Assembly: GCF_001447785.1 (NCBI RefSeq)
Contig: NW_015173751.1
Span: 18,875 to 82,874 of the forward strand
Length of the DNA: 64,000 bases
Reading direction: 5' to 3'
From: Gekko japonicus
Lineage: Eukaryota
Part shown: positions 1,733 through 63,067 of the stretch, piece by piece
Layout of the letters: each line of letters starts with the position of its first letter
How positions within the stretch are numbered: position 1 is the first letter of the stretch
The notes under the pieces: generated by a model
The model's input: the letters and a program-made list of their open reading frames with translations, nothing else
Database searches by the model: none
What the model was told of the DNA's origin: nothing
Translations under genes and position numbers: made by a program

Positions 1733-2095
1733 TAGGGTTACCAGGCCCAGCAGCAGATGGGGGGGGGAGTAACATGAGGGGCAGCCATGGGTGATGGCAT
1801 GATGTCATCCATGAAAACCTCAGGCAGGTGACATCAGTTATCTCTAGGAATCTCTGGAAACTTTCAGGGAAAACCTGGAAGTAATGCCAGTCTTCTCTAG
1901 GGATTGAGTTTCCAGCAATGCTTAGAGAGGTGTGATGTCACTTCCATGTTTTCCCTGGATGTGACTTCACTCCATAGGCCCCAAAGTGATTTTTTTATTA
2001 TTATTTTTTTCTCCTGATACTGCTCAGAGTAGTGGAGGCAAAATGGGAGCTGGGGGTGGGGGATCCTCCATCCTCACTGGGGGACTGGGAACACT
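1733..2095. mobile_element. Non-autonomous DNA transposon (MITE) of the AGGGTTGCCA...TGGCAACCCT type
   Basis: tagggttacca at the left end, degenerate gggaacacta at the right end, internal GATGTCAC/GTGACATC inverted motifs shared with other copies in the window. Confidence 0.55.
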
Positions 2096-33900: not shown

Positions 33901-33942
33901 CCTTCCCCCTTTGACTGCTCATCAGATTGATTGCTATTCTAA

Positions 33943-34377
33943 GGCCCCTGCCACACAGGGGGAAAAATGCGTGGCCAAAGTGCGGTTTTTGGAAGCCGCA
34001 CCAAAATAGACACGCCGCGGCGGGATCACATGAATCCCCTGAGCCGTTGCTCCCCAGCACAATCAGATGCCGGGGATGAAGCCACGGTCGGAGACCAAGG
34101 CAGCCGGCTGCGCATGTGTGCACATGCGCAGTTCGTCCAGGAGCCGGGAATGCGCCGGTAGAAGGACGCGCCGACAATCCCACGGTTGCGCTTGCCGTGG
34201 CCGTTCAGGTAAAACCACCTCTGTCAGTGGTTCTTTTTTGCTGCGGGTTTTCGGGGGTAGGGACGGATCGGGGACAGGTCCGCACCACTTCCCAGATGTT
34301 GCGGTGAGATCGTGCCCGTTTGCTGTGCCCCCGATCCATCCCTATCCCGGGCCAAAACCCTCGGTGTGACTGGGACC
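33943..34377. mobile_element. Harbinger-like non-autonomous DNA transposon, CpG-rich (young)
   Basis: ggcccctgccacac...gtgtgactgggacc TIRs with TAA on both flanks. Confidence 0.75.
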
Positions 34378-34877
34378 TAAGGTACTTTCATATTTTCATC
34401 CTGAGCCTTGGCCCAAAAGGATTTAGAGCTATGCAGTGCATGTCCAAGTTATGCCAGCCTTTCTCAAATATCTGTGAGCCTCATGTGTGGTCAGTTTCAT
34501 GCTCCTGTACCATCAGTATCAGGGTCTCAGGATGAGGCTGCTCACGAGCAATATAACAACCAAGTCCACGTCTGCATACTGGCACTGAATCTGTAAATGT
34601 CTGGATCACTTCTCTGTGGCACATTGAGTGCACTCCTGAGCTCTGAGGCTATTAGAAAATAGATAGTGAACAGAGTCTAACTATTGGCCTGTTTGGTCTA
34701 GGTTTTTTTTTTTTTTTGGTTTTTTTTTAAATATTTATACATTTATATCCTGCCTTTCCTCATGGTCCAAGGAGGCTCTTACTTGCAGCAACTATGAGGG
34801 TTTTTAAATATTCAGCTCTTTTACCTGAGATACTTTAACAGGTTGTATGTGCAGGGATGGAATGTACTTCACACCGA

Positions 34878-42982: not shown

Positions 42983-44633
42983 TTTTTAAGCCCCCAGAGG
43001 GGATTTTTTTAATACTACAAAAACTACCAAGAAAAAATAGGGAAAGGGTAACTACAACTAGGGAGAAAGAAAAGCAACCCACACTAAAAACCCAAGGTTA
43101 GGAGATCATTCCCTGTTAAGCTACTGTTAGTAATAAAAAAAGAAAAGCTATTAATAAACAATGTACTTTGTGAGAACCTATCTTTCTAAGCTTATATGTT
43201 TGTTTGCTACTTGTTATGAGAGGATTTCCTGAGCATCTCCTCCAGCTCACTTCATAAAGGCAATTTTCAGAGCCCTTCCGCCTTTACATCTACACTACGA
43301 CTCTCTAAAATCTTAATAGCTTCTTAGACGTTCACTCCANNNNNNNNNNNNNNNNNNNNNNNNNNNNNNNNNNNNNNNNNNNNNNNNNNNNNNNNNNNNN
43401 NNNNNNNNNNNNNNNNNNNNNNACTAAAAACCCAAGGTTAGGAGATCATTCCCTGTTAAGCTACCATTAGTAATAAAAAAGAAAAGCTGTTAATAAACAA
43501 TATACTTTGTGAGAACCTGTCTTTCTAAGCTTATATGTTAGTTTGCTTGTTACTTGATATGAGAAGATTTCCCGAGCATCTCCTCCAGCTCGCTTCATAA
43601 AGGCAATTTTCAGAGTCCTTCCGCCTTTACACCTACACTGAGACTCTCTAAAATCTTAATAGCTTCTTAGACGTCACTCCAAATTCTGCAGCCCAGTCTT
43701 CCTCTGTCTTCAAAGGGATAAAAATACCAATCTTGAGCCTCTTCCTCTCTGGTCTCACCCTCAGGGCCCAGTGGCATCTCAAAAGTTTCTTGATTGTGAA
43801 GGCAAATTCAAGCTCTTTTCTCTCAGCAAGATTTAAGATGACACTTTCTGAGGACACTTGCAAGGAAGGAGTTAAGTCCATGTAAATCTTTTCTGTTTCT
43901 CTTGTACTTTCCCTCCTTTTCTCGTTGAAATCGCTGTTTAATTTAATGTCCATCTCTTTCGCTTTAAAAGCCCTCAGTTCCATTTTTTCTGTTATCGTTG
44001 CCAACTGGAGCTGCCGGGACACAAATTGTTGATTTATCTTGGCAAGCTGCTGGACAATACCAACAAGTTGCTCCAGAATCGTCTTGGTGGCTACCGCTAT
44101 AGAGGTTTCGGGGGGGATTTTGCTTCAAAGTATCCGTTTACAATCATTTCTCTCTCTCCCCCCCCCCTCCGCTTATGTAAATGCATCTGAGAGGCGTCCC
44201 TCTCTCAGCACAATTCCGATCGCTCAAAAAGTTTTTCCTTTGGGAGGGGGGTTCTCTTCTGAAGACAATTTGCTCATTTTAACTCACAGTTCGCTTCTTA
44301 ACTCACTGTTCATTGTTGGTCTTTATCTTGACCACACTCTTGATCGCTCCTCCACTAGATCTTTTGCACTTGACCGGTTCAACACAGCTTATGGCCTTGC
44401 TGAGAGGATGCAGTCAGCGGGAGGGACCGTCAGGGCGGAGGGGAGCCACCATCTCCCTGCAGGTAGCAGGAAAAAAGGCCCACCCTCAAAAGCCCTATGA
44501 CCTGGGAGTTCCCCCCAAACTCCTGTGGAGGTGCTGATCCAGTGGCACCCCTCCCCCTCGCTGATATACAACACACCTTCCCAAAGAGCTGGAAAAGGTG
44601 TCCGCCATCGCTGTGCTGTAGACCCCGCCCTCC
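42983..44633 (-). mobile_element. Non-autonomous retrotransposon with a single orphan ORF and 16-bp TSD
   Basis: Perfect direct repeat agctagcaacacaatt at 42967-42982 and 44634-44649; GC-rich 5' end GGAGGGCGGGG...GATGGCGG; stop-free frame 44124-43648; short A tail on the minus strand. Confidence 0.8.
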
Positions 44634-45250
44634 AGCTAGCAACACAATTGACTGGTCAACTAGACTCAGGCCAACTGCTGGCAGTTTGGCATAAAGTAAA
44701 ACCCTTCATTCTAGTTTTGCACCTTTCTAGTTTGGATATCTCTTGATTTGTGGGCCAAATTGGGCCTTGCATGTCCAGAACACATGCTCTTGGACTTTGA
44801 AACTTTGCCTAGATTCCATGTCTCAGTCTGATCAGGTAGCATTTGGATTAGAGAACCAAAGCTTGTGTAAATATCTTAGGTTGGCTATTTAGATTTTATT
44901 TTTTTTCCCTTGTTTGTCATTGCTCTTATATTTGTATATTCCTACACATTTCTTTTAATAAACCTCCTGTGGTGTTTTTTTTTTTTTTGGGGGGGGGGGT
45001 TGGGGATTCAATCTAAATTCCGTATTTTAGCCTTCATTGGCTACTGATACCAGAGTAATTGTTTTTGAAACTCAGCTTGCAAATGTCCCACCCAGAAGGG
45101 CTAGAGACTCTGTCCCTTGTTCTCTGGCTGGAGGGTTAGAAAAACGGACTGGTTACCCTGGGGTTGTGAGGATTCAGTCCCCTGCATTTTGTGTTTGTTT
45201 TGCCTGACCTGTCTCTTTAGAAGTTTGCCAGGGAGAACCATGTACTGAGA

Positions 45251-45877
45251 TTTTTATTTATTTAACTTTCGACTTGCTACCCCGCTCAAACCCCACACAG
45301 GAGGTCTCTGAGCGGCTCTACAGTTAACCATTATCCCTTACCTAAGGCCACATATATGCTGGGGTGGGGACTGTCCTAACAGCACCCAGTGGAGGGACAT
45401 TCTGGATCGGCTCGTCGGCATGGCTTTCTTCTGGCTTCTTTCCTCCCGGTGGTGGTACAGCAGGCCTCCCTGGCGCTCGGCGCGGTTCCGGTGCAACTTC
45501 CGGTTCCGTCCATTAAGCCTCCACCGTGCATACGCCTTCCATGCTCCGGCATCTTTCCTGGCTCCACCTTCCACCAGCATCCGGACCCTCGAAGATGTTA
45601 TGCCTCCATCGCCATTTTCCCGCCGCTCGCCATCTGCCACTCGTCGTTGTTGCTCCACGGACCCCCTCAATGGGGGGAGGGTGCCCCCTACCATCTAAGG
45701 TAGGTACCCATTGATCTACTCGCACATTTGATGTTACATCGTGCTTTCGAACCGCTGGGTTGGCGGGAGCTGGGAACAGGGCCAGGTGCTCACTCTGGCC
45801 ACGGTGGGAATTGAACAGCTGTCGCAGCTGTTTGTAGATGTTATATGCAGGCATTTAACCGCCTGCGCCACCGCTTC
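45251..45877 (-). mobile_element. Chimeric SINE: Sauria-type tRNA head, GC-rich core, L2-type tail (most complete copy)
   Basis: A-box GGTGGCGCAGGCGG, B-box-like GTTCAATTCC, Sauria motif cccagctcccgccaacccagcggttcgaaagc...ggtacc, unique core, tail ctgtagagccgctcagagacc...gagcggggtag...taaataaataaaaa. Confidence 0.75.
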
Positions 45878-48101
45878 AACATTGGCCTGGGACCTAAGAT
45901 TATGGTTGCCATGTGTTGCCTGGCTGCTGGCAGGGGGTTCCAGCCCGGGTTCCTGACATGTATGCTATGCACACATGCTTAGATGACATCACCTGGAAGT
46001 GACATCATCACGCCAGGCACATCATGCAGGGGGCCTCTAGCATTTAGCCAAAATTCTATGCTCACCATAGATTTTTTAGCCAAATGCTAGAGAGTCCCCC
46101 AGGTGATGTGCCCGGCATGATGATGTCACCTCTGGGTGATGTCATCACACTGGGCACATTGGGTATAATGGGGCTCATTGGGGCCTCCTGAAAGTGGGGT
46201 GACCCCTGCCCCCATCAGGGGGATGTCAACCCTGAGACTTCAGGAGAAAGGACCAGATTATTGTGTACAAAATAATTATCAGAGCCAAGTGATTGTAAGC
46301 CAGTGAACAAAGGAGGTCACCACTTCCTTCTTTCCCCCACCTCCGTTGCAGTCACCTTTCTCCCTAATTGTGGCTCTGTTCTCTCCTCCCTGTCACAGCC
46401 ACAGCCCTCCCCTACAGCAGCAACTCCCTTCTTCCTTTGCAGTTGTGTTAAAGGCCATGGTGTGTGTGATTATCTAACATTCTTCCATTGTTGGAAAATC
46501 GAAAGGAATGGAAAAACTTGCTGCTCCCCCACTCCAGCACCTCTCCCTCTAGGAATGGGAGCTCACCCTTGAAGCCTTTGCACATGCACATGTGTAAAGG
46601 AAGCCTTACACCAAGTGAGACCCTTGATCCCTGTAGTTCAGTAGGTCATGCTCTGACTAGCAGTGTCTCTCCAGGTGCTCAGGCTAAGGTTTTCAGCATC
46701 ACCTACCATGTGATTGTTTTAACTATATATGCCGAGGACCAATCTGGGTATCTTCTGCACTCCCTGTCACTGAGCCATGGCCCTTCCCCTTTTGCAATGT
46801 TTCTGGAGCCTCTGGGCTAATTGAGAAAGGCACCTGGAAAAGGCAGCAGAGTGTGATTCTTTTGTACTGTGCTTGCTTCACTGACACCAGGGATCTCTTG
46901 TGCTGGAAAATAATAGATTGATCTAGCCTCTCCCACTTCTAGGCTGTATGTCTCAGCAGGTGCCCATCACCCTCTTCAAGATAAATGAGCTCAATTTCCC
47001 CAGAAGTCAAATGGCCAAATAGTCCTGCCTCATGGGCAAAGGTGAGACAAAGCTGGAAATATGGGCAAAATTAGCTACAACAACTGGTGCAATATCTTAT
47101 TTGTGTGGTTTTAAATTCAGATTCCTGTGAAAAATAATTACAGGATGCCACAAAATGATAAATCCTTTTTTCAGATTCCTGTGAAAAATAATTACAGGCT
47201 GCCACAAAATGATAAATCCTTATCATTCTTCTCTGATCTGATCTGTCATGAAATTGATTCACTATAAACTGTAGCACTCCCCAAGGTTGTATCTTGATAG
47301 TGCAATATGTATGTCAACAAGTAGTCTTGGAAGAATCATGTGTGTGTGTGTGCGCGCGCACACACACACACACATGAGTGATTTGTGGAACCTTGTTACC
47401 TAACCCTTGGACTGCTTTTGGATGCTGCCTTGGAACAGGTGCTTTGACCCTGGATTGAGACCTTGGACTGCCTTCTGACTTTGCATTTGGATTGTGTTAT
47501 CTGACCCTAGACTTCAACATTGGCCTGGGACCTAAGAACCCCTGCTGGGATTTGCCTGCTGCCTGGTAGCCAGGACAGTCCCTCATGTTGATCCCTGACA
47601 GTGGTTATGGGAATAGTTAAGGAGAAGCTTTTGGGTCTAGACAGGCGTTTCAGTCTTCGCTGTGGTAGAAGGGATGGTATTGCCTCAAGCAGATAGGTGT
47701 TCTGGTTATCATTAATTTTCTACCTTGAAAGAAAGAGGGGAAGGGGGGGGAGTTATTGTTCTTTGTAACCCGCCCTGAGCCCTGCTATGCAGGGGAGGGT
47801 GAGCTACAAATTTAATGAATTAAATAAATAAATAAAGATTGTGTGAATTAGGTCTCTGTATTATGGGTCTCTGTGTGGGTCACCTACCTCACATATTACT
47901 TCAGGGGCTTTGGGGGAGGTAAACACACACGTATTCCTATTCATCATCTGGCCAAGCATTTAAATTGGTACTTGTTCCTGTGCTGTGCAAGTTATATTTT
48001 ATTGTTGATATAGCCTTGTTCCGATTTCAGTCATATATAATTCAGATGAAGTGGTGATAATAATAAAGATCAGAAATTGGGACAGAAGGTTATACCAGAG
48101 T

Positions 48102-48398
48102 TAGGGATGGGCATGAACCAGGAAAATGGTGGTTCGTTTGATTAAACAAACCACTAACCATGAATTTACATGAACTTTTCTGTTTCCCCAAACCAGTTCA
48201 TGGTTCATCAGGTTTGTGAGTTCGTAGAATGGCCTCACCCGGAAGTGAGCCCCGAAGGCATTTAAATGCCATGAAAAACACGGAGGTTTGTGAGTGGATT
48301 GTGGCAGACACATTCTCCCAAACCCCTGGTTCATGAACCATAAACTGGCCTGGATCATGCTTGAACTGGGGTTTATTTGGGTGTTTGTGCTCATCCCT
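48102..48398. mobile_element. MITE with AGGGATGGGCA...TGCTCATCCCT ends
   Basis: Inverted termini and many internal gaacca/tggttc inverted motifs. Confidence 0.7.
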
Positions 48399-49792
48399 GA
48401 TCAGTGTATAATATAACTCTTAGAAGATGGTTTTGTATTCTGCCCAGTGTCTGCAGACTACAGGAGAATACTTGTAGTCATCTTCTTGAAGCTTGGCACC
48501 CATTCTACCCCTTCCTTTAAGATTTGCTCACTTCTCTTGACTCTCTTTCCATTCCCCAGTCAGCCATAACTGGGTAACGTTAACCCAAACTCTCAAACTA
48601 ATGTAAACTAAGAGGTTGTTGTGAGGATGAAATGGAAAAAGAATTATGGACACCACCCTGAACTCCTTGGAGGAAGTGTAATAAAATGTGGTAAAATATA
48701 ACAGATTAAGTGAAGTGTTGGTAAGTTAAGTGCGATCAAAAGTCTAGGACTGAAAGAACAACTTTAGGCATATATAAGGGCTCGAGTATACTCCATAGAA
48801 TTTTTCTGAGACTAAAATCTCTAATGTCAGCAAATCTCTAGTATAATAATAATTATTATTATTAGATTTCTGAATTGCCCAATGTGATTTACAGCATTAA
48901 AACAGATAAAATACAAACAGCATGATAACATTATTACAGTGCACTAAGAAAACAACCAATCCAGATGGTGATCAATCCTTTTTGCCAGTTGCCATGCTCT
49001 CCGTGCAGCAGGGTGGGGAAGGGAACGTGGGGTCAAAAGTAAAAAAGGAGGGTGCCAGTTTTAACCATTGCTGTCCTCAGCCAAAAGCCTGGTGGAACAT
49101 CTCTGCCTTACAGGCCCTGTGGAATTTCATCAGATCCCATAGGGATCTCTCAAACCAGAATTGGCAATTCAAGTAATAGCCTAGTGACAAGCAGGTTTCT
49201 GTAGCTGATGTCAAAAGTAATGTAGGTATGCCATATGATGCTGTTCTGGGAGGCAAAAGGGGTTCCCATTAATGCAGGAGATGGCACAAAGGAGTTCCCA
49301 TTAATGCAAGTGATGGATGACTCTATGCAGAAATGTTGTCGGTTTTGAGGTGGAATGTTGGAAAAATTAGAAGGTCTGGGGGAGGAAAAAGGTGTTTCAA
49401 GGCATGATGGAAAAGCACCAGTCTGTAGCTTTTGCAGTGTAATCCTATGTAGAGTTATTCCAGTGTAACCCCATAGGATTACACTGTTAGAGTGTTAAAG
49501 TAGAATATAGGTCATGTTGCAGAATTTATTGCATAATATCATGGTATTGGGTACAAAATAGGTCTTATAGTGTACCAAAGACTACTTCAGAAGTTGAACA
49601 AAGTTTGAGTCCAGTGGCACCTTTAAGAATAAGAGCAACAAAGTTTTATTCTGGGTATAAACTTTTGTGGGCATGCATTAAAATCAGTGACTTTAGAAGG
49701 TGTTGGAAATTTTGTAGAGTGCATAAAGCGCTGTGGAATAACACATCAAAAGACATGAGTTTGTTTAGCTTCTAAGAAAAATACTTTACAAA

Positions 49793-50162
49793 GGCCCCGG
49801 TCACACGGAGGATTTGCTGCGGAAGAGGCATGAATGTTGGGCGGAGTATACGGGCACGATCACAAGGACACACCTGGCAAGCATAGCAGACCCGTAGCAT
49901 CTGCCCGAAGATCCGGAGTTAAAAAATACCCAGGAAAGCCTACTAGCAATTTTTTTGTTACGGACTATCAATGGAATACCTATGTGTGATCGCTCAAGCA
50001 CACTCCTCTCACCGTGTTGATGCGCGCCGCAAACACGCTCCGACAAACAAAACCCTGATTTGCCGCCACCACGTCTGATCGCGTTCTGGCACATTAAATT
50101 GCGCCAGTGTGAAAAGCCACGCCTCCCCCCCCCTGCATTATCTGGCCCGTGAGACTGAGGCC
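49793..50162. mobile_element. Harbinger-like non-autonomous DNA transposon, CpG-rich
   Basis: ggccccggtcacacgg...ccgtgagactgaggcc TIRs; same left end as 39111. Confidence 0.65.
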
Positions 50163-50185
50163 TAGAAAACATAGGGAAAGGGTTA

Positions 50186-51353
50186 CATAGAAAGGGGAAA
50201 ACAATATCAGCCCAAGTCATCTTTCTAGTTCTAACTCCATCTTTGTCCCTCCATTCTGCTCATGCTGTTCTGTTCTTCTGTTCTGACCCTAAGAACAAAG
50301 AAATGGAAGTTTCTCCACAAGGCCGCACCCCTTGAGTATGTGCAGAATAGTCAGTCTTAAGATCACCTCATTAAGAATAAGACCTCCCCCTTGTTGGTGG
50401 GAAGATTCTACTTGGCACCCAATTGGTTCTATCCTACACTTGTTTACTAGCTTAAGAAACACCATCTTAACCCTTTCATGACAGAGAGGATGACACTTGC
50501 ACAACTCAACAGTAGGCTATAACTCTGCTTAGGCTAGCACTGAGAAACATGATGGAGCTTTAAAGAACATTGCCCATTTCTTTAACCTCATTTATATTTC
50601 TTAAAGAATTTTTAAAAGATATCCTTTATGGTAGGGAAGATTATATTGTTTTAATCCTTTGAATGCTGCAGATTCAATCATTACTTTTTAAAAGTTTCTA
50701 CAACACAAATGTACAATGATGAATCAGATCTGCATGGAGATTGAAACTGTAACACAAATATCCACAGGTCATAGAAAGGGGAAAACAATATCAGCCCAAG
50801 TCATCTTTCTAGTTCTAACTCCATCTTTGTCCCTCCATTCTGCTCATGCTGTTCTGTTCTTCTGTTCTGACCCTAAGAACAAAGAAATGGAAGTTTCCCC
50901 ACAAGGCCGCACCCCTTGAGTATGTGCAGAATAGTCAGTCTTAAGATCACCTCATTAAGAATAAGACCTCCCCCTTGTTGGTGGGAAGATTCTACTTGGC
51001 ACCCAATTGGTTCTATCCTACACTTGTTTACTAGCTTAAGAAACACCATCTTAACCCTTTCATGACAGAGAGGATGACACTTGCACAACTCAACAGTAGG
51101 CTATAACTCTGCTTAGGCTAGCACTGAGAAACATGATGGAGCTTTAAAGAACATTGCCCATTTCTTTAACCTCATTTATATTTCTTAAAGAATTTTTAAA
51201 AGATATCCTTTATGGTAGGGAAGATTATATTGTTTTAATCCTTTGAATGCTGCAGATTCAATCATTACTTTTTAAAAGTTTCTACAACACAAATGTACAA
51301 TGATGAATCAGATCTGCATGGAGATTGAAACTGTAACACAAATATCCACAGGT
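50186..51353. repeat. 584-bp tandem duplication (2 copies)
   Basis: 50186-50769 and 50770-51353 differ by only one substitution that I could find (ttctcc vs ttcccc); duplicated ORFs 50289 and 50873 are offset by 584. Confidence 0.95.
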
Positions 51354-52574
51354 ATCTAAGGTCAAGAAGTGGGAAAGTAGGCTGTGACAATAAAGTGAAA
51401 TGTTTCTGTCATGCCTAACATGGAATATCAGAATCCCATGCCTGGTATTTCAGCAAGAGTTCCTTTCAGTTTTGCCTTTCAGAAGGGACAGATTTGCATG
51501 GAGGAAAATATTGCATATTAACAAAGATGGCACTAAGGAATGGTAAACAGGCTCCGGGCCAGGCAGCCATTGTCAGATCTAGACCTGAAGAAGTTGTCCT
51601 CCTTCCCTAAAGAAAATTACAGGAAATATGACATGACCTATAATCTGGAGCCTGAGGTGCAACAGGAAGACCATTCTACTTTGCTGACCAGGTAAGGCAG
51701 AAGGCTAGGCCAATCCAGAGGCTTCATACTGCCTGCCAACCACATACCTATTCCCTGCAGAGCAGGAGGAGGGCTTTGGAGCCTCAGCATACACAGTCCC
51801 AATCTGCTCACCAGCAGTACAGTGCCATTCTAATTACACCCTTCTAAACCCATTCACTTCAATGGAGTGAGGAGAGTGTAACTGTTTGAGGATTATACTG
51901 TAAATCTCAGCCTTGAGCCATGTGTTTTCAAAGTCCCTGATACATAAGAGGCTTCAGAGCTGGTGATGTCCTCCACCCCCCGATCTCTTACAGTACAAGC
52001 AATGTGCCTTTCCATTCCACTGATCTTCTGAGGGTGGGGGGGGGGAGAAATAGATGTAATTACAGGTACATTTGCAGTCCTAACCACACTTTGGAGTGAC
52101 TTTCTTTTAATTCTCCAGCTGTGAAGCCATCTAACATGCTCAGGGGATCTAATTATACTAAGAAGCCTGCTTTCCTGGTGGGCTTTAATAAGCACCGTTC
52201 GTTCCAGAACTGTACCAACCTGCGTCAAAGGCCTGCAACTGTGCAGGACTGATACTGTGGGCATGTAATGCATAATTTTGTAATATAATTGCACTTAACG
52301 CTTACATCATTACTAGGGCACTGCTGGAACAGAAGCTGCTTCTACGGTACTGGAGGTAATGCTTCCATTAATGCTGATCTGTAGGGGCCAGAGGGATAAT
52401 AAAGGGGCTGGAGACCTAATGGTGAGATTTAGTCCAAACACTAGTTTTATGGACATTATGTAACAGGGGGAAGGGATCTCTCTGTGTGTTAACTCTCTGT
52501 TTATTGTGCTGCCATAGCTGGCATAACCTGCAGCAGCTGGTTCTTTTCACAGATGACTTAACAGGAATCATGGG

Positions 52575-52884
52575 TGTTATGTACTGCTGGAGCTTGAGTC
52601 GGAGCGAAGGCTCCAAAGGCTTTCAAGGCTATTGGTTGTGTTGCTGGTAACGGCCAATCGTATTTGTTGCTTTATAATCCAATAGCTGTACTGTAAATAG
52701 TTACTTTGTATATGGTCCATGTAAGGATCCTAGCTGCTTACTTTGTATCGGTTGTTGTTAAAGGTGGGTGTGGTTTCTACAAGTATAAATTAATTCCTGT
52801 TGAGCCAGTGAGTTCAGTCTGATTCCAGAGTTCAATAAAGAAGCTGTTATTGTGAAAAGAGCTGCCTCATCTCAATACTTAATA
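52575..52884 (+). mobile_element. Probable solo LTR (Gypsy-like)
   Basis: TGTTATG start, CCAAT, TATAAA at ~52785, AATAAA at ~52834, degenerate ...taataa end; imperfect 4-bp flanks. Confidence 0.45.
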
Positions 52885-53123
52885 ATGTGTATAAAATTAC
52901 TGATGCTTTTGCATATAAGAGGATGTGTGTTGTTGAGCCCTGAACTGTAGTTGTAGCAAGCTCCCTTTACCTTTTTTTTTCTCTTATGACTGCTAGAAAA
53001 TCTCTGGAGGATCCCATTAATATAGCCCCACTTCCTTTTAAACATTATTATAGAAAGTACAAAGCTAGTTAAAATCTATTAGTGCAATAGATATGTACAA
53101 GGTAAATATGTTAGATGCATTTA

Positions 53124-53662
53124 GGGTGAAGTCACACATGCCAGATAAAGGGGGGGGAGCGAGGCTGTTTTCTCCGGAGACATTTGACCCACAGTTGTGA
53201 GATCACACCTCCCTTTGAAGCTGTGGGCGCCTGTCATTGTGTGATCAAATGCAACTGTGGGTGAGTGGTTTTTTTTTTTTTGCCATTTGTTTCCCATGCG
53301 CTTAAACGAGGAATTCATGAATCGCACCTCTGCACTGAGGGCTTCCTATGGAGTTTGTGATGATGCGCATACTGAGAGGGGGGGGAAGCAACGGCACAGA
53401 GTCAGGATGGCCTGATCAGACCACCCCGAGGGCATGAGAGTGCACGGGAGCGATCAGACAGGGGAAAGTCCATCCGTGGCCCATCACAACTCGTTTACTA
53501 CTGGATTTCCCCCAGTGTCTTTTAACTCCGCTTCTGCAGCAGAGCAGAACGGGTTGTTGACTGCTGTGGGACGCTTCCCAGATGTTGCTGTCTGATCGCT
53601 CCCTTTAAATCCACCCAGCATTTACACCTATGTCACGACTAATTGTGTGTCTTATCGCAGAC
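53124..53662. mobile_element. Harbinger-like non-autonomous DNA transposon
   Basis: TTA on both flanks; inverted homologue of 27117-27673 (gatcagacaggggaaagtccatccgtggccc). Confidence 0.75.
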
Positions 53663-53777
53663 TTAAATATGTATTCATTTGCCTAATCTCATGCTTGACA
53701 TAACATTGTGAGCCAAGAAGGTTGTTCAGACCATGTAATGTTTCAGTGCTGTCTGTTTCACCAATTTGGTGAACTTT

Positions 53778-54018
53778 TTCAGGCACAATGCAAGATGCTG
53801 GTGTTGACCTTTAACACGCTACATGGTTTTGGCCCAACATACCTGAAAGACCACCTACGTCCTTATGAACCTACCCAAACACTATGGTCATCTTCAGAAG
53901 CCCTGCTTTGGATGGCCCCTCCTTCTGAAACTAGGCAGTTGGCAATACAGGAGAGGAGGTTCTCAGTCATGGAACCGAAACTCTGGAACTCTCTCTGCAA
54001 AGAGACTTACCCGCCCCC
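53778..54018 (+). mobile_element. L2 LINE ORF2 C-terminal fragment running into a gap
   Basis: KMLVLTFNTLHGFGPTYLKDHL...FSVMEPKLWNSL. Confidence 0.85.
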
Positions 54019-55104
54019 NNNNNNNNNNNNNNNNNNNNNNNNNNNNNNNNNNNNNNNNNNNNNNNNNNNNNNNNNNNNNNNNNNNNNNNNNNNNNNNNNN
54101 NNNNNNNNNNNNNNNNNNNNNNNNNNNNNNNNNNNNNNNNNNNNNNNNNNNNNNNNNNNNNNNNNNNNNNNNNNNNNNNNNNNNNNNNNNNNNNNNNNNN
54201 NNNNNNNNNNNNNNNNNNNNNNNNNNNNNNNNNNNNNNNNNNNNNNNNNNNNNNNNNNNNNNNNNNNNNNNNNNNNNNNNNNNNNNNNNNNNNNNNNNNN
54301 NNNNNNNNNNNNNNNNNNNNNNNNNNNNNNNNNNNNNNNNNNNNNNNNNNNNNNNNNNNNNNNNNNNNNNNNNNNNNNNNNNNNNNNNNNNNNNNNNNNN
54401 NNNNNNNNNNNNNNNNNNNNNNNNNNNNNNNNNNNNNNNNNNNNNNNNNNNNNNNNNNNNNNNNNNNNNNNNNNNNNNNNNNNNNNNNNNNNNNNNNNNN
54501 NNNNNNNNNNNNNNNNNNNNNNNNNNNNNNNNNNNNNNNNNNNNNNNNNNNNNNNNNNNNNNNNNNNNNNNNNNNAAAAAATGGCAGATTCCAGCCCGTT
54601 TGAAATTGTATGTAGAATAGTAGTTATTAATCCTCTAGAAAAGATTAGTGCAACTGTTACCTCCAAGCCAAAAAAGACCCTCCAGCAGAGTAACCCAAAG
54701 GGGGTGCTCAATAAATGTCCAAGTGTTGCTACTTGTCTAGGACTGCAAAAGCAAGGTAATTAAGCATCAGAGAAGGTGCTATTCATGGTCAGTGAGCTGC
54801 ATTTGGTAGGGTGGGTCACAAGTTAGGCAGGTCTGTTCAACAGTCAGGAATCAGGTGGCTAGTTATACCCTTCTAACCTCGTTGACCTCAATGGGTTTAG
54901 AAGCATGAAACTCTACTTAGTACTACACTGCCAAAAAGGTAAAGTGGAAACACAATACATAAGTGCTGAAAAACACATATATTGACAAAGCTTGCATACA
55001 GCTGGGACTGACATGGTGGCAAACTCAGTTTTAGCAGAAGGTGGCAAACCTGAGTTTGTTGCTGAGTGTGTGAAACAGCACTGAAACTCAACAGGAAATA
55101 GACA

Positions 55105-56135
55105 CGTTCCTTAGGCTGGAATTAGATTTGAGTTATCAATTGCTGCAAAGTAAGGACAAATCTCAATTGACCTTCCTTAATGACATTGTTTCCCGATATA
55201 CCATTCCAGATGATTTACTCCAGCTTTCCGGAAACAATGCTGATTTGAGGGAAAGGATTTACAAAGAGGATGACAAATTACTAATAAGTCAATCAAAATT
55301 TGCTCCACGGTATAAAAACATAAAAAGATCACTTTAAAGCATGCTATTTAACCAAAATCACAACCCACAATCTCAGAATAGCATTCTCATCATTTCCAGT
55401 CAATGACAACTGAGATGCTACTTAGACAATTAAAACAACAACAACATGGATCAGCGTATATGTAGTTGTGGAAGTTTGATCAACGACTTACCACACAATG
55501 GTCCTTTCTGCACTAGACTTTAAATCCTGGTTCAATCCTGTCCCCGAACTTACATTCTACACTACATGTGAGTTCACCCCTGTAATTATCTTGGGGTATT
55601 TTTACATTCTACACTACACTTGAGTTCACCCCTGTAATAATCTTGGGATATTTTTTTTTGTTTCCACGTTACATTGAGGGCAACCCGCTTTCACCCCATA
55701 CTTGTCCTGGGATAAATGGATGCTGTTATAACCAGAGTATTGTGTTGTGAGTTGAACTCTGATAAAACCAGGGATGAGATCCAAGTGCGAAAAGGACTTA
55801 TGTTTTAATTTGTACTTTAAAATCAGAACCAGGGAAAATTTTCTGGTCTCCTCCTTCTGCCTGATCTTGATAAATTAAGTTTCATGCTATCAGACATGGA
55901 TTCTTTTATTTCCAAAAGGATGGTACTTGACGCCCTAGCTGCCAGGAAAATAAGAGCAAATGTGGTAGCCAGGAAAGTAAACAGCTGATATACATCGTCA
56001 TCTAATAGTTTCTAGAAATTATCTGATTTTAATGTCGATTAAATTTTAAACAAACGTTAAATATTCATATCTGCATTGTATGTATATCTTTATTATGTTT
56101 GGATTGTAAAGACCTATGGCCATATAGAATACATT
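55105..56135 (+). mobile_element. RTE-X-like LINE 3' fragment interrupted by a MITE
   Basis: YTIPDDLLQLSGNNADLRERIY...SQSKFAPRY is clearly homologous to YTIPDDLLFPSGNNLHLRDWVY...SRQKFAPRY in 21058-21426. Confidence 0.75.
55500..55798. mobile_element. Harbinger-like MITE
   Basis: ggtcctttctgcactaga...tccaagtgcgaaaaggact inverted ends; ~52-bp internal tandem duplication. Confidence 0.65.
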
Positions 56136-56251
56136 TTCTACCTATCCACCTAGATGTTATGCCAAATATAAACATGCTGCTGAAAGCAATGGACAGTGTC
56201 TGTCTCTTCTTTCATCTCCCATAACATCAAATGAACACTCACTGTATAATG

Positions 56252-56687
56252 CAGGGGTGTAAACATGCGGCCCAAGGGCCAGATCAGGCCCCCGGAGGGC
56301 TTCTATCAGGCCTGTAGTGGAACTGGCTGTCTTCTGCTTCTTCTTCCAGTTCTGCTGCTGTTGCGTCATCATAGATTTGCAGCTTACAGATATACACCTG
56401 AACAGCATACTCAAGAGTTTGCAACAGCACAGACTTTTTGATGCAATAATTCAGAGCTAGAGGTGGTAGTTATCAGACACTGTTAAATAAGCAAACGATT
56501 GCAAGAGTGCTGATGTTTTAAGCATGTTTTATTTTCAGTAAAAAAAAAAAAGCTTTGTGTTTGTGTCTTTTATAAAATTTATATCTCTGCTACTTGGCAT
56601 TACATTTTCTGACACACATGGTCCGGCCCAACAAGGTCTCATTTATGTCAGATCTGGCCCTCATAACAAATGACTTCGACACCCTTG
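56252..56687. mobile_element. Non-autonomous hAT (Charlie-like) DNA transposon
   Basis: caggggtgt...gacacccttg TIRs, subterminal ggccc motifs, perfect 8-bp TSD gtataatg (56244-56251, 56688-56695). Confidence 0.9.
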
Positions 56688-56885
56688 GTATAATGATTTC
56701 ATTCTGCTGTGAGTTTTCCTATTTCTGCTTCACTTCACTACCTGCTGCTTGTGGAGCAGGAAAGCTTGCAGTGTAATGGTATAACATCTAATGTAATGGG
56801 TGAGGGCTCTGACGTGAATATGATTGCTAAGTGGACTTACCTAATTGAACTGTCCCAGTTATGAGCAAAACAAGTTCTTGTTTGT

Positions 56886-57026
56886 TATCTGAAGAAGTGA
56901 ACAGTGACTCACGAAAGCTCATTCCCTGCCTCAAATTTTGTTAGTCTTTCAGGTGCTACTGGACTCTTGCTATTTTCTACTGCTAAAGACAGACTAACAC
57001 AGCTAAACAGCTACCCATCTTGATCT
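56886..57026 (+). mobile_element. Penelope-like element 3' end with minimal hammerhead ribozyme core
   Basis: CTGAAGA-a-gtga-acagtgac-tcac-GAAA-gctc-a, followed by a ttagtctttcaggtgctactggactc... tail related to 12190-12307. Confidence 0.75.
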
Positions 57027-57513
57027 AAATTCCAATTTGGATTACTGTGATGATTTTTATTGAAATTGAGCACCATGTTGAGCAGCATTACACTTGTGCA
57101 GTAGCCACTTGTGCTAAAGGGCCAGATCGTGCCATGTTAATAAATTATAAACTTGATCAAGTCTTCCCAGTTACCTGAGAAGAGGCATTTCATCACAGTT
57201 GGGTCATTAAAATTACTGGATTGTCCCCTCTTTGCATTTGCATAACTGGATGCACACACATAATTGGATAGAGCCTTTAAATGACCAACATTGGATACTT
57301 TACATTGCTTGCCTTTTGCACCTGTGCAGTCAGCAGCATCTGTTTATAAAAAGACTGCAAAGATTAGCAAGGTTCATTGGCAGATAGACATCAAAGGCAT
57401 AGACACATAAGTAGTAAATCTAAAAAAATATATATTTTTGAAAAAAACTATGTGCTTTTTAACAATTGGAGGTGGCAAAAACAGATGAGTGGCAGGGGCA
57501 AAAAAGTGGTTAT

Positions 57514-57716
57514 CAGTAGGGTTCCCTCTAAGCTGAGTTAGTGTGAGCTAGCTCACAGTTTTTTAGCCTCTGGCTCAGACATTTTTGTCTTAGCTCAGGA
57601 AGGAGGGCTCCAGAGCAAACTAATTTATACAGTAGCCAAATCTCTTGCTCACAACTTTAATGCCAGTTGCTCACAAATTTTTACTCACAAGACTCCACAG
57701 CTTAGAGGGAGTATTG
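57514..57716. mobile_element. Non-autonomous DNA transposon with ttccctctaagctg TIR
   Basis: cagtagggttccctctaagctg...cagcttagagggagtattg; gttat on both flanks. Confidence 0.7.
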
Positions 57717-58261
57717 GTTATGAGAGAAAGCAGTATAATCACACAAGCGGATATAACGCTAGTGGCTGGTTTTAAAGGAACAATGCCTTTATTTCTGAAA
57801 AACTATGCTGTTTTTAAAATATTTAATTGTATTGTTTTTGTATTTTTAATTTTTATGTCACCATAAGAAAATCTTTGGGACAGCAATACATTTTCTAAAC
57901 AAATACGTATATCTGAACTGCTTGATTAAATGATCCATTCCCTCACTACAGAAAGCAAGATGGGTGGGCAATCAAACCAGTGGATGACCAAGCATAGCTA
58001 CATCACATAATGACTATCCCTAGATGCTACTGGTAATGAAAGTACAATGAGAAAACACAGGAAGGACTATTGTTTTTGGCAACAACTCTGCATCTGGTTA
58101 ATGCCTACTACTGGTCTAACTACTCTTTACTGTCATTTGGACATATTAGGGCTATTGTCCTTCAAAAGACACCTGACTGTGAGGCTACGGCCCCTGAAAT
58201 TCCTTGTTACAATGTGACAGTGCAAACTTCAGTAGAAATAGTATTATGTTACTGACTTAAA

Positions 58262-58612
58262 GTAAAGGGAAAGGTTCCCTTGCTTGAAAGCCAGTCGAAT
58301 CCGACTCTAGGGTTGTGGTGCTCATCTCCATTTCAAAGCCGAAGAGCCAGCGCTGTCCGAAGACGTTTCCGTGGTCATGTGGCCGGCGTGACTAAACACC
58401 AAGGTGCACGGGAACGCTGTTACCTTCCCACCAAAGTGGTACCTATTTATCTACTTGCAATTTCTTGCTTTCAAACTGCTAGGTTGGCAGGAGCTGGAAC
58501 TAGAGATGGGAGCTCGTTCTGTCATGGGGCACACTCGGGTCTCGAACTGCTGAACTACGGACCTTCCACAGCCTGCAGTTCAGTGTCTTAACCACTTGAG
58601 CCACCACAGCTC
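58262..58612 (-). mobile_element. Sauria SINE (Squam1), full length
   Basis: tRNA head, cagctcctgccaacctagcagtttgaaagc...gtagataaataggtacc body, ACCTTT-type tail; 10-bp TSD ctgacttaaa (58252-58261, 58613-58622). Confidence 0.9.
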
Positions 58613-59498
58613 CTGACTTAAATAGGAGTATAAAATTTTAGGAGGAGAAGTTGCTGTATGTTGCAAGGATTTAAAGTGCATTGGTACTGTGAAGACTTTG
58701 AAAAGGAGACAAAAAGGGTGGGAGTTCTCATTCCCTGTTGGGATAGTTTAAATCAATGCCTATGTTAGTCAGGGATGATGCCAAGCATCCAGGGATGGCA
58801 ACGCTGCATCCCTGGTTTAATTTAAAATAAATCAATGAATTTAGCATATTGGGGTTTTCTGTTCTGGGAAGTAAGAGGAGGGCAAAGAGACACTACTTTT
58901 TCATACCTGCAGTATTGACACAGCAGGAACATCTAAGAAGCATCAGCAAGGGAATGGAATATACTGCAAAGTAGCATCAATTAACTTTAATTAAGCTCTC
59001 CTAAGGCCTGTGTGTTCGGAGATCATTTTTCTTTCCGTTCCCTCGTTAAGCAGCTTTCTCGGTACAACTTCCTACACATTTCTACATACAATGCTAAAAA
59101 AGAACGAGGGAAATTATTTTTTCTTTCAGCAAACTTGTACTGCTCAATCAATGAAGGGTTTGCTGTTCTGTTACAGGCTAGCCGTAATAGCTAAATGTGA
59201 ACACTTAGTGTATTTTGTGGCTAGAGTTTTGTGTCTGAAAATGAGTCCAGCACTCAGAAACGGACTACCTGGGACAGAATGAGCCTGTGGTCTAGAGTCA
59301 TAGCAGCACATACAATTTCTCTGCATTTCTAACTGGAGAATCTCAGGGGCATCTCTGCCAACTGCATAGGATCTAGACTAAGCTTCTATTTCCCTTCTTC
59401 TTACAGATATTTAAGCCTTTGCATGACTGAGTGCTGAAGTGAAGGGCAAGAGTCCTTAGCCTGTGGCTTATTGCCTCCTCAGATGGAAGAAAGAGTCA

Positions 59499-59726
59499 GG
59501 GCAATTTCGCACTAGAGCTGCCTCGCGGCACAGCCGCCGTTTGCCCTGACACAAACATGTTAATTTCACACCTGAGGCTGCGGGGCTGCATTTGACCCGC
59601 GTCTTCGCCCGATTTCCTCTGCAGTTTCGTGATCCTCAAATACCAGGATCACGAAACTGCGGAGGAAATCGGGTGAAGCCGCGAGTCAAAATACAGTCCC
59701 GCAGCGTCGGGTGTGAAATTAACATG
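59499..59726. mobile_element. Young CpG-rich palindromic MITE, right end lost in a gap
   Basis: catgttaatttcacac...gtttcgtgatcct / aggatcacgaaac...gtgtgaaattaacatg inverted repeat centred at ~59641. Confidence 0.75.
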
Positions 59727-60319
59727 NNNNNNNNNNNNNNNNNNNNNNNNNNNNNNNNNNNNNNNNNNNNNNNNNNNNNNNNNNNNNNNNNNNNNNNNNN
59801 NNNNNNNNNNNNNNNNNNNNNNNNNNNNNNNNNNNNNNNNNNNNNNNNNNNNNNNNNNNNNNNNNNNNNNNNNNNNNNNNNNNNNNNNNNNNNNNNNNNN
59901 NNNNNNNNNNNNNNNNNNNNNNNNNNNNNNNNNNNNNNNNNNNNNNNNNNNNNNNNNNNNNNNNNNNNNNNNNNNNNNNNNNNNNNNNNNNNNNNNNNNN
60001 NNNNNNNNNNNNNNNNNNNNNNNNNNNNNNNNNNNNNNNNNNNNNNNNNNNNNNNNNNNNNNNNNNNNNNNNNNNNNNNNNNNNNNNNNNNNNNNNNNNN
60101 NNNNNNNNNNNNNNNNNNNNNNNNNNNNNNNNNNNNNNNNNNNNNNNNNNNNNNNNNNNNNNNNNNNNNNNNNNNNNNNNNNNNNNNNNNNNNNNNNNNN
60201 NNNNNNNNNNNNNNNNNNNNNNNNNNNNNNNNNNNNNNNNNNNNNNNNNNNNNNNNNNNNNNNNNNNNNNNNNNNNNNNNNNNNNNNNNNNNNNNNNNNN
60301 NNNNNNNNNNNNGCTCCCC

Positions 60320-60836
60320 CTTTATTTATTAATTAATTTATTTATTTATTTATTTATTATTTCGATTTGCTACCCCACTCAAACCCCCTAAGGGGTCTCT
60401 GAGCAGTTTACAGATTAACCTTTATACCTAATCTATGGCTACAGAAACACAGGGTGGGGACAATCCCTACCGGCACCCAGTGGAGGCACTGGAATTCCCG
60501 GGTCAGCTTTCGCCGGCTCGACGTCTCGGCAGTCTCTGGCTCCATTTTTCTTTCGATGGTCTTTCTTGTGGTGCATCAGCAGGGCCCCTTCGACATGCCT
60601 CACACTCCGGCGCGGCTTCGGCTCTGTCCTTCCGGCTCCGCCACGCCTGCACTGTCCATGCTCCTCACATCATCCGACTCTGCCTCTTCACCACCGTCTG
60701 TTCCGTCTTTCGAGCTGTACCAGGACGCCATCTTCCAGCCGTTTGCCGCTCGCCGCTTCGCTGTTTCACCAGACTCGACACTCCAACAACTCCCCTCGGC
60801 GGGGGAGGGTGCCCCCTACCCTCTAAGGTAGGTACC
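60320..60836 (-). mobile_element. Chimeric SINE, second copy (5' truncated at ggtacc)
   Basis: Tail and ggtacctaccttaga(g/t)ggtagggggcacc junction shared with 45251-45877; core homologous but strongly diverged. Confidence 0.75.
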
Positions 60837-60912
60837 ACAGCCATTGGCTGCCTCCTGTGGGGCCGGATTACTTGCAGACTTGAAGAAGCTGGGCCAGCAG
60901 ATCTGGGACTGG

Positions 60913-61090
60913 TATGTATGTCAGTGCCATCAAGCCAAAACCGACTTCCGTGACCCCAGCAAGAGGATTTCAAGGCAAATGAAAAGCAGAGGCAGTTTGC
61001 TGTGGTCTTCCTCTGCAGAGCCTTCCCTGGGTGGTCTCCCATCCAAGTAATGACCCTACTTAGCTTCAGGTCAGACTGTACCATGCTGCC
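60913..61090 (-). mobile_element. 5S rRNA-derived SINE
   Basis: ggtggtctcccatccaagta...cttagcttc is the reverse complement of 5S-like sequence; RTE-like tail as at 10500. Confidence 0.7.
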
Positions 61091-61351
61091 TTCCCTCCCT
61101 CTGGGACTAATGCATATTTGTTGTTTTCCCATTTGTTTCTTTAAATTGTATGTTTGTATTTGGAAAGCTGTTTCGGGGCCTCTGTTAAAGCAGTGCAGAG
61201 GTGCAATGACAGTGGAGCTGCCCCGAAAGGGCAATAAACATATGCAGATGTGCAAAAATATGCTAGCACTGTTGAGGTGTGAAAACGACACCAAATGTAG
61301 ACAGCTTTTTTGAAGACGGAGTCAAAAGGCTGGGACACCAGTGAGAAAGAA

Positions 61352-61462
61352 TATAAGAACATAAGAGACACCAATGTTGGATTAGGTCAAAGGCCCATCC
61401 AGTCCAACACTCTGTGTCACACAGTGGCCAGAAATACCAGGTGCCATCAGGAGGTCCACCAG
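61352..61462 (-). mobile_element. CR1 3' end fragment
   Basis: ataagaacataaga tail and aaaggcccatccagtccaacac motif. Confidence 0.7.
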
Positions 61463-62151
61463 AAAGACAAATGCAGATTCAGCCAGTATCTAAAACTGGA
61501 ATAATAGTGTTGTACCCTCACAGGACATACACAGATAGAGAAACTTGCTGTCTTTAAAGGCAATTTGTAGCTTTTAAGTGGCCTTGACATCAGCTGGTAC
61601 AAACAGAGAGTTCATTTTTAACAGGTAGGGTTTTTGCCACACAGGAAGCCATGCTGTGGCTCTAAAGCCTCTAAGGAAATAAAAGATGAAGCAGCTGCTC
61701 AGTCTTTGTTAATACTGTTGTGTGCTGTTCCTTGGTCACTTTGTGTGTTGTACTTTTTAATACAAAGAGGAAGGCGGACAACAGGACCAAAAGCAGGACT
61801 GAGCAGGAAAGGCTACACTCCCCTCGCACTGTGGAAATTAAATGCACAATGAGAGTTTCTCGGTGACATCCTGACAACCCTACTCAGTTCGTGTGTCTTG
61901 TTTGCATAAATAATATGCACTTTCATCTTACGCCAGTAGATGGGCAATATTCCCTTCCATAATTTCCCATGGGTCACTTGGTCAAGCTAGAGACACTTAT
62001 CCAATCATATTGGCCAGTTTTATGTCCTTAAAGGAGTTCTGCGTTGGTGCAGCCTGGTGAGGGCTATCTTACAATATGTTTCTAAATTGTTGAATGGACT
62101 TTGAGGGCCTTACTTTGAACTAGATGTTCCCATTCATAAATTAAGAGTAGG

Positions 62152-63067
62152 CAGGGCTATTTTGGGGTAGGAACGTACAGGAACGCAGTTCCGGCTGGCT
62201 CCCAAGTTGGCCACGCCCAGCAGGAACTCATTAACATAATAGGCAACACCCAACAGCAGAAACTCATTAGGATTGGCTACAATTAGGGGGTGTGGCCTAA
62301 CATGCAAAGGAGTTCCTGCTACAAAAAAAAGCCCTGGGTTTTGTCAACAAACAAGATTAGCCTGCAGGTTAATCTAGCCATACTGCCGATAGCAGTTCGA
62401 GTCCCACCGTGGCTGGGGTGAGCTCTCGGCCCATTGTCCCAGCTCCTGCCCACCCAGCGGTCTGAAAGGTTATACAGGCAAGTAGGTAAATGGGTACCTG
62501 CTCCTTACGAGCGGGGGGCACCTTTCCTCCGTGATTGGTGTTAGAAAAAAGCAGCAACAGAGCGAGCAACGGAAGACCGGTGCCTGGAAGCATGACATGC
62601 GGCAAGGACTGGAGCCGATTGGACAAGGAGTCCAGCTGCCTCGTTCATGTTCTGTGGGGGCCATCTGTTGGAAAGAAGCCGCTACTGCAGACGAATCTAC
62701 CATCGAAACTCCACCGGCGAATTCAAAAGGAAAAAAGATCCTGTTGTTAGGTGCCTAGTTAAGAAAAAATACTCTCCCCTCACCATTGTACCCTAGCTTA
62801 GATAAATTGTGTATGTGTCTGTAAAACCGCTCTGAGCCATATGGATAGGGCGGTATATAAATCATAAATGTAATGTAAAGAGAATAAGAAGCAAAAGGTG
62901 GGTGCGGTTGGATGACCACACTTCTGGTAACATGGGGGTGTGACCTAATATGCGAATGAGTTGTGCTGTCAGGGGTGTGGCCTAATATGCTAATGTGTTC
63001 CTGCTGTTGGGTATGGCCTGTTATAATATAGAGTTCCTGCTGGGCTTTTTCTACAAAAAAAGCCCTG
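62152..63067. mobile_element. Non-autonomous hAT-like element (composite)
   Basis: cagggctattttt...aaaaaaagccctg TIRs; 8-bp TSD (a/g)gagtagg at 62144-62151 and 63068-63075; extra internal right end at ~62336. Confidence 0.65.
62360..62879 (+). mobile_element. Chimeric SINE, third copy (A-box missing, most divergent core)
   Basis: gttcgagtcccaccgtggc...cccagctcctgcccacccagcggtctgaaagg...aatgggtacc head and ctgtaaaaccgctctgagcc...gggcggtatataaat L2-type tail. Confidence 0.7.

Follow-up and report, generated by a model that had tools for sequence, protein, structure and literature searches.

In SINEBase, a SINE is a short (<1 kb), interspersed, non-tandem repeat with a length between 75 and 662 nt and a head that comes from tRNA, 5S or 7SL RNA and holds an internal Pol III promoter, and elements that differ in their LINE-derived region or carry a long inserted module are assigned to different families (PMC3531059). 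One such element is the Sauria SINE or Squam1, which PMC10702118 and PMC13295347 credit to Piskurek 2006 and Kosushkin 2006. It consists of a tRNA-like head and a 'core' up to GGTACC, a Bov-B/RTE-derived 3' end and an (ACCTTT)n tail, and PMC13295347 describes a target-site duplication of ~10 nt, in most cases T-initial. Squam3 is presented in PMC7983390 as a Ther1/MIR-derived, L2-dependent family that has an L2-like 3' terminus, ends in (TAAA)n and is very rarely flanked by target-site duplications. The accessible sections of squamate SINE surveys that cover 56 genomes, including four geckos, list Squam1-3 alone, with lengths of 190-350 nt (PMC10702118, PMC7983390). According to Kojima 2018 (PMC5786205), the body of a SINE can originate in the 5' region of a LINE, and the head is then acquired through template switching.

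We analyzed a 64-kb stretch of Gekko japonicus DNA (64,000 nt; hereafter the window), in which the original prediction had placed three copies of a chimeric SINE with a Sauria head, an L2-type tail and a hypervariable core. All three were found where it had put them, and we refer to them as copies A, B and C throughout. The copies are dispersed and non-tandem and measure 517-649 nt, near the upper end of the SINEBase length range of 75-662 nt. Copy A lies on the minus strand and spans 45248-45896 (649 nt) when measured against a contig from a related species in which the site is empty. The bounds first given for it (45251-45877) had the location right, but the full extent may be greater, as the 5' boundary can be placed only to within 19-23 nt: one end is at 45248 or 45251, and the other falls between 45877 and 45896. 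The disputed 19 nt at the 5' end (45878-45896, minus strand) are either SINE leader or filler or part of the host repeat. They are missing from the empty-site contig of the related species, and positions 45874-45899 are identical to 47512-47537, which lies inside a SINE-less copy of the diverged repeat.

Read on the minus strand, copy A begins with a tRNA-like head and Sauria-type core (45709-45877), which is delimited by homology to the Sauria SINE and to copy C and stops just before GGTACC. The head is followed by a conserved 36-nt junction block (45673-45708) that contains GGTACC, a 6-bp hairpin and then a G5/C5 hairpin; a variable body that is G+A-rich, T-poor and CpG-rich (45396-45672); a conserved 14-nt pre-tail block, CCTCCACTGGGTGC (45382-45395); a LINE-like 3' region (45265-45381) with a terminal stem-loop at 45282-45315; and a (TAAA)n-type microsatellite tail (45251-45264), read from the sequence. 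Copy B (60320-60836, minus strand) is 5'-truncated at GGTACC, and its 3' side adjoins an N gap at 59727-60312. Its junction occupies 60801-60836, its body 60487-60800 and its pre-tail block 60473-60486, and the tail and (TAAA)n extend to ~60321. Copy C (62360-62879, plus strand) has a head without the first ~25 nt and is nested between inverted arms at 62215-62320 and 62934-63045. Its head (62360-62492) and a diverged junction (62493-62530) are followed by a body and tail that gave no secure alignment to copy A or B. As a comparator we used a canonical Sauria SINE on the minus strand (58262-58612, or 58252-58622 with its target-site duplication), which has an (ACCTTT)-type tail.

The composite element has in common with the Sauria SINE/Squam1 the tRNA-like head and the 'core' up to GGTACC, but it has neither the Bov-B/RTE-derived 3' end nor the (ACCTTT)n tail. 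It is also longer, ~640 nt versus ~350 nt, and contains a hairpin block and a CpG-rich body that Sauria lacks. Under the SINEBase rule, the composite element is therefore a family separate from Sauria/Squam1. We lean towards the view that it represents a LINE-dependent composite SINE family with a head taken from Sauria/Squam1, a body and tail that most likely came from the partner LINE, and a diversity that goes back to an old source and to module exchange.

We compared the heads with each other and with the canonical Sauria SINE. In the self-comparison of the window, the heads of copies A and C were 79% identical over 82 nt, and their local alignment had a z-score of 30, with 0 of 500 shuffles reaching the score. 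Against the canonical Sauria SINE (58440-58612), z was 12.7 for the head of copy A and 17.1 for that of copy C (0/500 shuffles in each case). Copy C and the canonical element matched just upstream of GGTACC in the self-comparison, and a three-way alignment placed the end of the Sauria likeness at GGTACC. A Sauria-type head running to GGTACC, as had been predicted, was thus found in copies A and C (z 12.7 and 17.1), but copy B is headless because it is truncated at that very motif. By eye, the head of copy A contains A-box-like and B-box-like motifs. ARAGORN called no tRNA genes, and an Rfam search of 44000-64000 at E ≤1 gave no match inside copies A, B or C; a known RNA was rejected on these results.

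The junction block is 35/36 identical between copy A and copy B (60801-60836), and when the window was searched for the junction pattern with at most three mismatches, it occurred exactly twice, compared with 0 expected. The block is predicted to fold as two small hairpins. The first of these is kept in copy C, where one of the five or six stem pairs is changed on both sides (three sequences), and in the junction consensus 2 of 16 predicted pairs are changed on both sides (three sequences). For the stem-loop of the tail, the consensus of five sequences has 10 predicted pairs, of which four are changed on both sides and several are broken, and its energy is weak. Possible compensatory changes in the junction hairpins (three sequences) and in the tail stem-loop (five sequences) are suggestive only. 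Since the junction of copy C can change its sequence yet keep the hairpin, the near-identity of copies A and B in this block suggests recent common ancestry.

At the other end of the element, the tails of copies A and B were 74-79% identical (79% over 149 nt, z 35.7). The tails of the copies end in (TAAA)n instead of (ACCTTT)n, which bears out the prediction of a tail that is not of the RTE type. The tail of copy C is weakly similar to the others, with its score reached by 23/500 shuffles against copy A and by 4/500 against copy B, and a terminal stem-loop is predicted in all three copies. We also compared the tails of copies A and B, with the microsatellite removed, to two other (TAAA)n-ended elements in the window, labeled 23k and 47k. 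Shuffled sequences reached the score in 3/500 cases for A-47k, 13/500 for A-23k, 63/500 for B-23k and 123/500 for B-47k, so that the likeness is weak, with one of the four comparisons at 3/500 or less. The sole L2-like ORF2 remnant in the window, with an RVT_1 domain at 3427-3918 and a C-terminal motif near 4217, is cut before its 3' end. The canonical Sauria SINE is flanked by a perfect 10-nt target-site duplication, TTTAAGTCAG, at 58252-58261 and 58613-58622, whereas no duplication of at least 7 nt was found for any of copies A, B and C (0/3). The longest terminal duplication of copy A, at the ends set by the empty-site contig, is 5 nt (AATCT).

From the stem-loop, the (TAAA)n end and the near lack of target-site duplications, all of which are reported for Squam3, we infer an L2-type partner LINE for the tail; the assignment draws on architecture and the literature. 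The traits of an L2-dependent SINE that we found, namely (TAAA)n, the stem-loop and few target-site duplications, are a likeness of architecture, and the sequence likeness to the other (TAAA)n-ended elements in the window is weak. By description, the composite element resembles Squam3 in its (TAAA)n tail, in its LINE-like terminal region, in the near lack of target-site duplications and in being abundant in geckos. Squam3 differs in being 218-271 nt long, in having a CORE domain and in a head of independent origin (PMC7983390).

In copies A and B, identity over aligned columns of the body was 54%, with 43 gap columns. The change is abrupt: from 97% in the junction, identity dropped to 27-70% within ~30 columns, and it recovered to 14/14 at the pre-tail block and to 83-87% over the 3' stem-loop. 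The substitutions comprised 63 transitions and 62 transversions. Despite this divergence the two bodies are homologous (z 13.8, 0/500 shuffles). The likeness between the bodies of copies A and C was marginal (18/500 shuffles reached the score), and that between copies B and C was non-significant (109/500). The cores of all three copies had been said to share six islands of sequence. This holds for copies A and B, the only pair with demonstrably homologous bodies (z 13.8), but not securely for copy C (18/500 and 109/500). What copy C securely has in common with the others is the head and the junction architecture only. It is more diverged than copies A and B in every module, with a head at ~76-79% identity, a junction at roughly 65% by our own count from the alignment, and a body and tail near noise.

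The sense strand of the A and B bodies has the composition G 0.39, A 0.27, C 0.22 and T 0.12; the core is purine-rich, as proposed, and T-poor as well. The observed/expected CpG ratio was 0.96 in body A, 1.04 in body B and 0.85 in body C, compared with 0.24 in the window, and the bodies rank among the CpG-densest of the 2024 270-nt windows that were examined. The predicted CpG richness of all three cores (0.85-1.04) was therefore correct. Body A contains 23 CpGs and body B 28, and only six are at common positions, which indicates that the CpG richness is compositional rather than inherited site by site. The sense strands contain no TTTT, also as described, but when the three copies were dinucleotide-shuffled, TTTT was missing from 38% of the shuffles as well. 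The absence of TTTT is thus non-significant, and we rejected it as a Pol III signature.

Several other accounts of the body were considered and set aside. A VNTR or minisatellite was rejected because TRF at a score of 30 found no tandem repeats in the bodies. A coding body was rejected as well: the copies have no ORF in common, and a protein search with the 118-aa sense ORF of copy A gave six word-sharing candidates, none at E ≤0.001, and led to no further copies of the element. Whole-copy fold z-scores of -1.87 for copy A (20 shuffles), -2.92 for copy B and +0.47 for copy C were unconvincing for a globally structured RNA. A long-range helix between the junction and the pre-tail block was also dropped; the partner ranked best in copy B and third in copy A and was not found in copy C. 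The bodies had no matches elsewhere in the window, and a fourth copy at 33940-34380, proposed from its CpG density, proved to be an unrelated CpG-rich element. An exact-pattern scan of metagenome contigs for further copies returned 0 matches.

To place the three copies in a genome-wide context, we compared positions 44950-46150 at ≥80% likeness with four read sets. Two of them consisted of contigs from DNA runs, X1 from the same species and X16 from a related one, and the other two, X21 and X22, were raw RNA runs. The depth of a single-copy contig is ~50 in X1 and ~8-14 in X16. We summed contig depth per 41-nt bin; since this sum is no copy number, only depth ratios were used. In X1, summed depth was 42k-91k over the first part of the head, 377k-993k over the Sauria-like core of the head, which includes the canonical Sauria SINE (loose ends at 45742), 100k-172k over the junction, 103k in the pre-tail bin (45360-45400) and 35k-53k over the tail. 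In six body bins, it was 0.84k-7.2k (840-7163). The corresponding values in X16 were 117-154, 9.7k-21k, 111-454, 102 and 165-433, and all six body bins had a depth of 0. In X1, body depth was therefore 14-200 times below junction depth, and the pre-tail block was as abundant as the junction.

This genome-wide trough, together with the drop from 97% to 54% identity in the window, bears out what had been predicted from three copies, that the body varies far more than the blocks that flank it. The family-specific blocks are roughly a hundred-fold commoner in the X1 species than in the X16 species. Summed depth suggests thousands of copies in the lineage of this species versus tens in the related species. 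There are many sublineages, which have the head, the junction and the pre-tail block in common and bodies more than 20% different. With the element-free contig of the related species, the trough over the body indicates that the family is abundant, largely lineage-specific, recently active and equipped with many different bodies.

These data also bear on whether the bodies are unrelated captured cargo, each copy being a one-off retrocopy with a SINE head and an L2-type tail that arose by template switching or transduction. The body of copy C, which has no significant alignment to that of copy A or B (18/500 and 109/500 shuffles), would fit such an origin. However, the homology between body A and body B (z 13.8, 0/500) largely refutes, for this pair, the proposition that the cores are unrelated captures. 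In addition, A-like body sequence was present in 6-10 other X1 contigs per listed position (summed depth 0.5k-6.4k) and in RNA reads, and the equal abundance of the pre-tail block and the junction also speaks against one-off events. We regard captured cargo as most unlikely.

We examined the age of copy A at its insertion site. A 365-nt contig of the related species (X16 record 9, depth 11.7) runs straight from 45897-46101 into 45247-45089, from which it follows that the related species has the flanks of copy A joined without the element. This contig could be a paralogue, because both flanks of copy A are repeats themselves. The filled state is seen in the same species, where X1 record 2 extends over the 5' junction (45848-46011) with one difference. 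Of 7333 X1 pieces compared, 448 were ≥99% alike and 1493 were 95-99% alike, counts that include the flanking repeats. We examined 12 listed positions at which copy A stands apart from nearly all relatives; at six of them, a CpG in the relatives has become TpG or CpA in copy A. CpG decay at half of these positions indicates that copy A inserted fairly recently and that its source was richer still in CpG. Each copy had been thought young; for copy A this is supported by the empty contig of the related species, the many contigs at least 95% alike and a CpG decay that has just begun.

RNA reads cover the head, the junction and the tail. They map equally to both orientations and have no defined starts or ends, and 85-91% of them run on into unlike sequence. 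Without strand bias or defined ends, the RNA runs are uninformative on Pol III, and most of the reads may be read-through. Just past the junction, the loose ends of RNA reads are heterogeneous (agreement of 0.59 over 119 reads in X21), and in X22 they resemble the body of copy B by eye, unaligned. Reads within the body of copy A carry fixed differences from copy A, which indicates that another A-like copy is expressed rather than locus A. The original prediction spoke of several co-active master lineages, and the RNA, in which more than one type of body occurs, is consistent with several lineages being active.

The jump from 97% to 54% identity between copies A and B can be read in three ways: the joining of modules, old master lineages with constrained blocks, and accelerated change of the body. 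The jump fits module exchange or old lineages at least as well as it fits fast evolution. With one full and two truncated copies, module exchange is indistinguishable from strong constraint on the junction. We favor a mix of module joining and old lineages for three reasons: the near-identity of the A and B junctions suggests recent common ancestry, the 46% raw divergence of the bodies far exceeds the few percent between the flanks of the two species, and the substitutions between copies A and B show no signature of editing.

The reading of the body that had been put forward with the prediction was that it changes fast in co-active masters, for example in escape from silencing; the change could come from hypermutation or positive selection, while the flanking blocks are held constant. 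Such a process would account for a body at 54% identity between conserved blocks, for bodies that are each CpG-rich though only six CpG positions are shared, for the several body types in RNA, and for a recent expansion whose bodies are nonetheless very different. The substitutions tell against it. The 63 transitions versus 62 transversions, with 43 gap columns, are what saturation, old divergence or replacement would leave rather than editing, and by our own arithmetic on the counts, corrected for base composition, changes do not fall on any base in preference to the others. Base-specific hypermutation was rejected on these counts, and no mechanism of targeted mutation is visible. On present evidence, module exchange or old diversity among lineages is more likely than unusually fast point mutation of the body, and we consider the reading of a fast-changing body as a whole very unlikely.

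A more elaborate proposal regards the body as a CpG-island or promoter module that is portable, protects itself and stems from partner-LINE 5'UTRs, with YY1-like and ETS-like sites; it would be unmethylated in the germ line and repeatedly swapped onto one conserved Sauria head and hairpin. We judge this proposal quite unlikely. If it were true, the element would be a SINE diversifying through cassette exchange under host silencing pressure, and it would offer a natural system in which to study recombination between a non-autonomous element and a LINE and the evasion of repression.

The variability could have a more ordinary explanation. RepeatMasker and Dfam have a class called tRNA-Sauria-L2, which we take to combine a tRNA promoter or head, a Sauria core and an L2 end, that is, the same three-module logic as seen here. 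Given this class, the combination of head and tail is probably catalogued somewhere. The element could then be an ordinary catalogued family of this type with old subfamilies that differ, and its hypervariability would reflect the comparison of three members of distant subfamilies. The class itself favors such an explanation, as does the greater divergence of copy C from copies A and B in every module, and multiple co-active lineages are usual for squamate LINEs. On the other hand, the divergence between copies A and B is not uniform, falling from 97% to 54% within ~30 columns and returning to 83-87% at the stem-loop, and body depth is 14-200 times under junction depth. The accessible sections of the surveys that include four gecko genomes name Squam1-3 alone, none longer than 350 nt (190-350 nt; PMC10702118, PMC7983390). 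In searches of published papers, we found no description of a long SINE with a Sauria head and an L2 tail and no paper that uses the class name tRNA-Sauria-L2. An ordinary catalogued family is a possible but doubtful explanation of these observations.

Returning to the LINE-dependent composite family that we favor, we propose the following origin. A putative tRNA-like Pol III head and the 'Sauria core' would have been inherited from the Sauria/Squam1 lineage, and the modules after the head are arranged in the order hairpin block, body of ~280-310 nt, 14-nt block, stem-loop 3' region and (TAAA)n. The body and tail would most likely derive from the partner LINE, as in Kojima's model of a bipartite LINE plus a small-RNA head, and the body may be a CpG-rich 5'UTR or promoter-like piece of that LINE. 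Such an origin would account for a body that is CpG-rich, promoter-like and fast-diverging. YY1-like and ETS-like motifs, which lie in the A and B bodies at positions that align, are weak evidence in its favor, since they were chosen post hoc and the two copies are not independent. The diversity of bodies would mostly be old diversity of the source, added to by the exchange of modules, body and tail alike, on a head and junction of recent common origin, and the exchange could have taken place by template switching during reverse transcription or by recombination. The SINEs of bipartite-LINE origin likewise have a small-RNA head, a body whose origin is not known and a LINE-type 3' end, a CpG-rich promoter-like body and what appears to be frequent exchange of parts. 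They differ in that the published cases are mostly of the RTE type and were shown by alignment to a LINE, whereas here the LINE source is an indirect deduction.

Taken together, the composite SINE elaborates a known kind of element, and what is unusual about it is the strongly variable, CpG-rich body. The original prediction largely got the description of the element right. SINE families are usually given one consensus, and in this one, which has expanded ~hundred-fold since a recent species split, many strongly different bodies are combined with one head and one tail logic. Because the family is long, CpG-rich and abundant, it bears on how gecko genomes are masked for repeats, on their methylation maps and on the calling of CpG islands in them, and scoring orthologous sites for the insertion could supply a phylogenetic marker. 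If confirmed genome-wide, the family would be a clean case of a partner-LINE switch, from RTE/Bov-B to an L2-type element. It would also be a case of modular body exchange and a test of Kojima's proposed origin of SINE bodies in the 5' regions of LINEs.

At the 5' junction of copy A (45248-45896, minus strand), one of three copies in the window of a composite SINE family with a Sauria-type head, a variable CpG-rich body and a (TAAA)n tail, we found a 26-nt segment (45874-45899) that is identical to 47512-47537. The latter is part of a host repeat that is diverged and internally repetitive, in a copy that holds no SINE; this host repeat is also similar to both flanks of copy A. We also observed that the 26-nt identity stops exactly at the SINE start. 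For copy C (62360-62879, plus strand), inverted arms that are about 83% alike were found on either side of the element (62215-62320 and 62934-63045), which suggests that a hairpin-forming repeat was the insertion target of copy C. The canonical Sauria SINE, in turn, is bounded by a perfect, T-initial target-site duplication of 10 nt (58252-58622 with the element), which agrees with the insertion signature reported in PMC13295347.

The tails of copies A and B (B, 60320-60836, minus strand) have a LINE-like 3' region with a predicted terminal stem-loop before (TAAA)n. Two other elements, at 23270-23340 (minus strand) and 47755-47836 (plus strand), resemble these tails in layout, each ending in a G-rich stem-loop and (TAAA)n, and their sequence similarity to the tails was weak after microsatellite removal. 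A LINE ORF2 remnant was also present at 3427-4290 (RVT_1, E = 2.3e-12). Its C-terminal stretch, LDYCN...LHWLP...FKAL, is one we take to be typical of L2, and the remnant is cut upstream of the 3' end, which is missing.

At 33940-34380, a distinct element about 430 nt long equals the SINE bodies in CpG density (CpG o/e about 1, GC 0.61-0.63). It carries neither the head nor the tail of the composite SINE family; it may be a young derivative of a DNA transposon.

Beside an N gap, a hairpin at 59596-59685 gave several sub-threshold miRNA-family matches, the best of which reached 51 bits, where the gathering score is 96. Sub-threshold miRNA-precursor matches (Rfam) also fell on a palindromic, MITE-like, very high-copy repeat that adjoins copy A (45975-46150; inverted arms within 45982-46146). 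The summed depth of this repeat, which adds up contig depth per bin and is not a copy number, was 200k-325k in contigs from the same species (single-copy about 50) and 24k-50k in those from a related species (about 8-14), and we therefore conclude that the repeat is abundant in both species.
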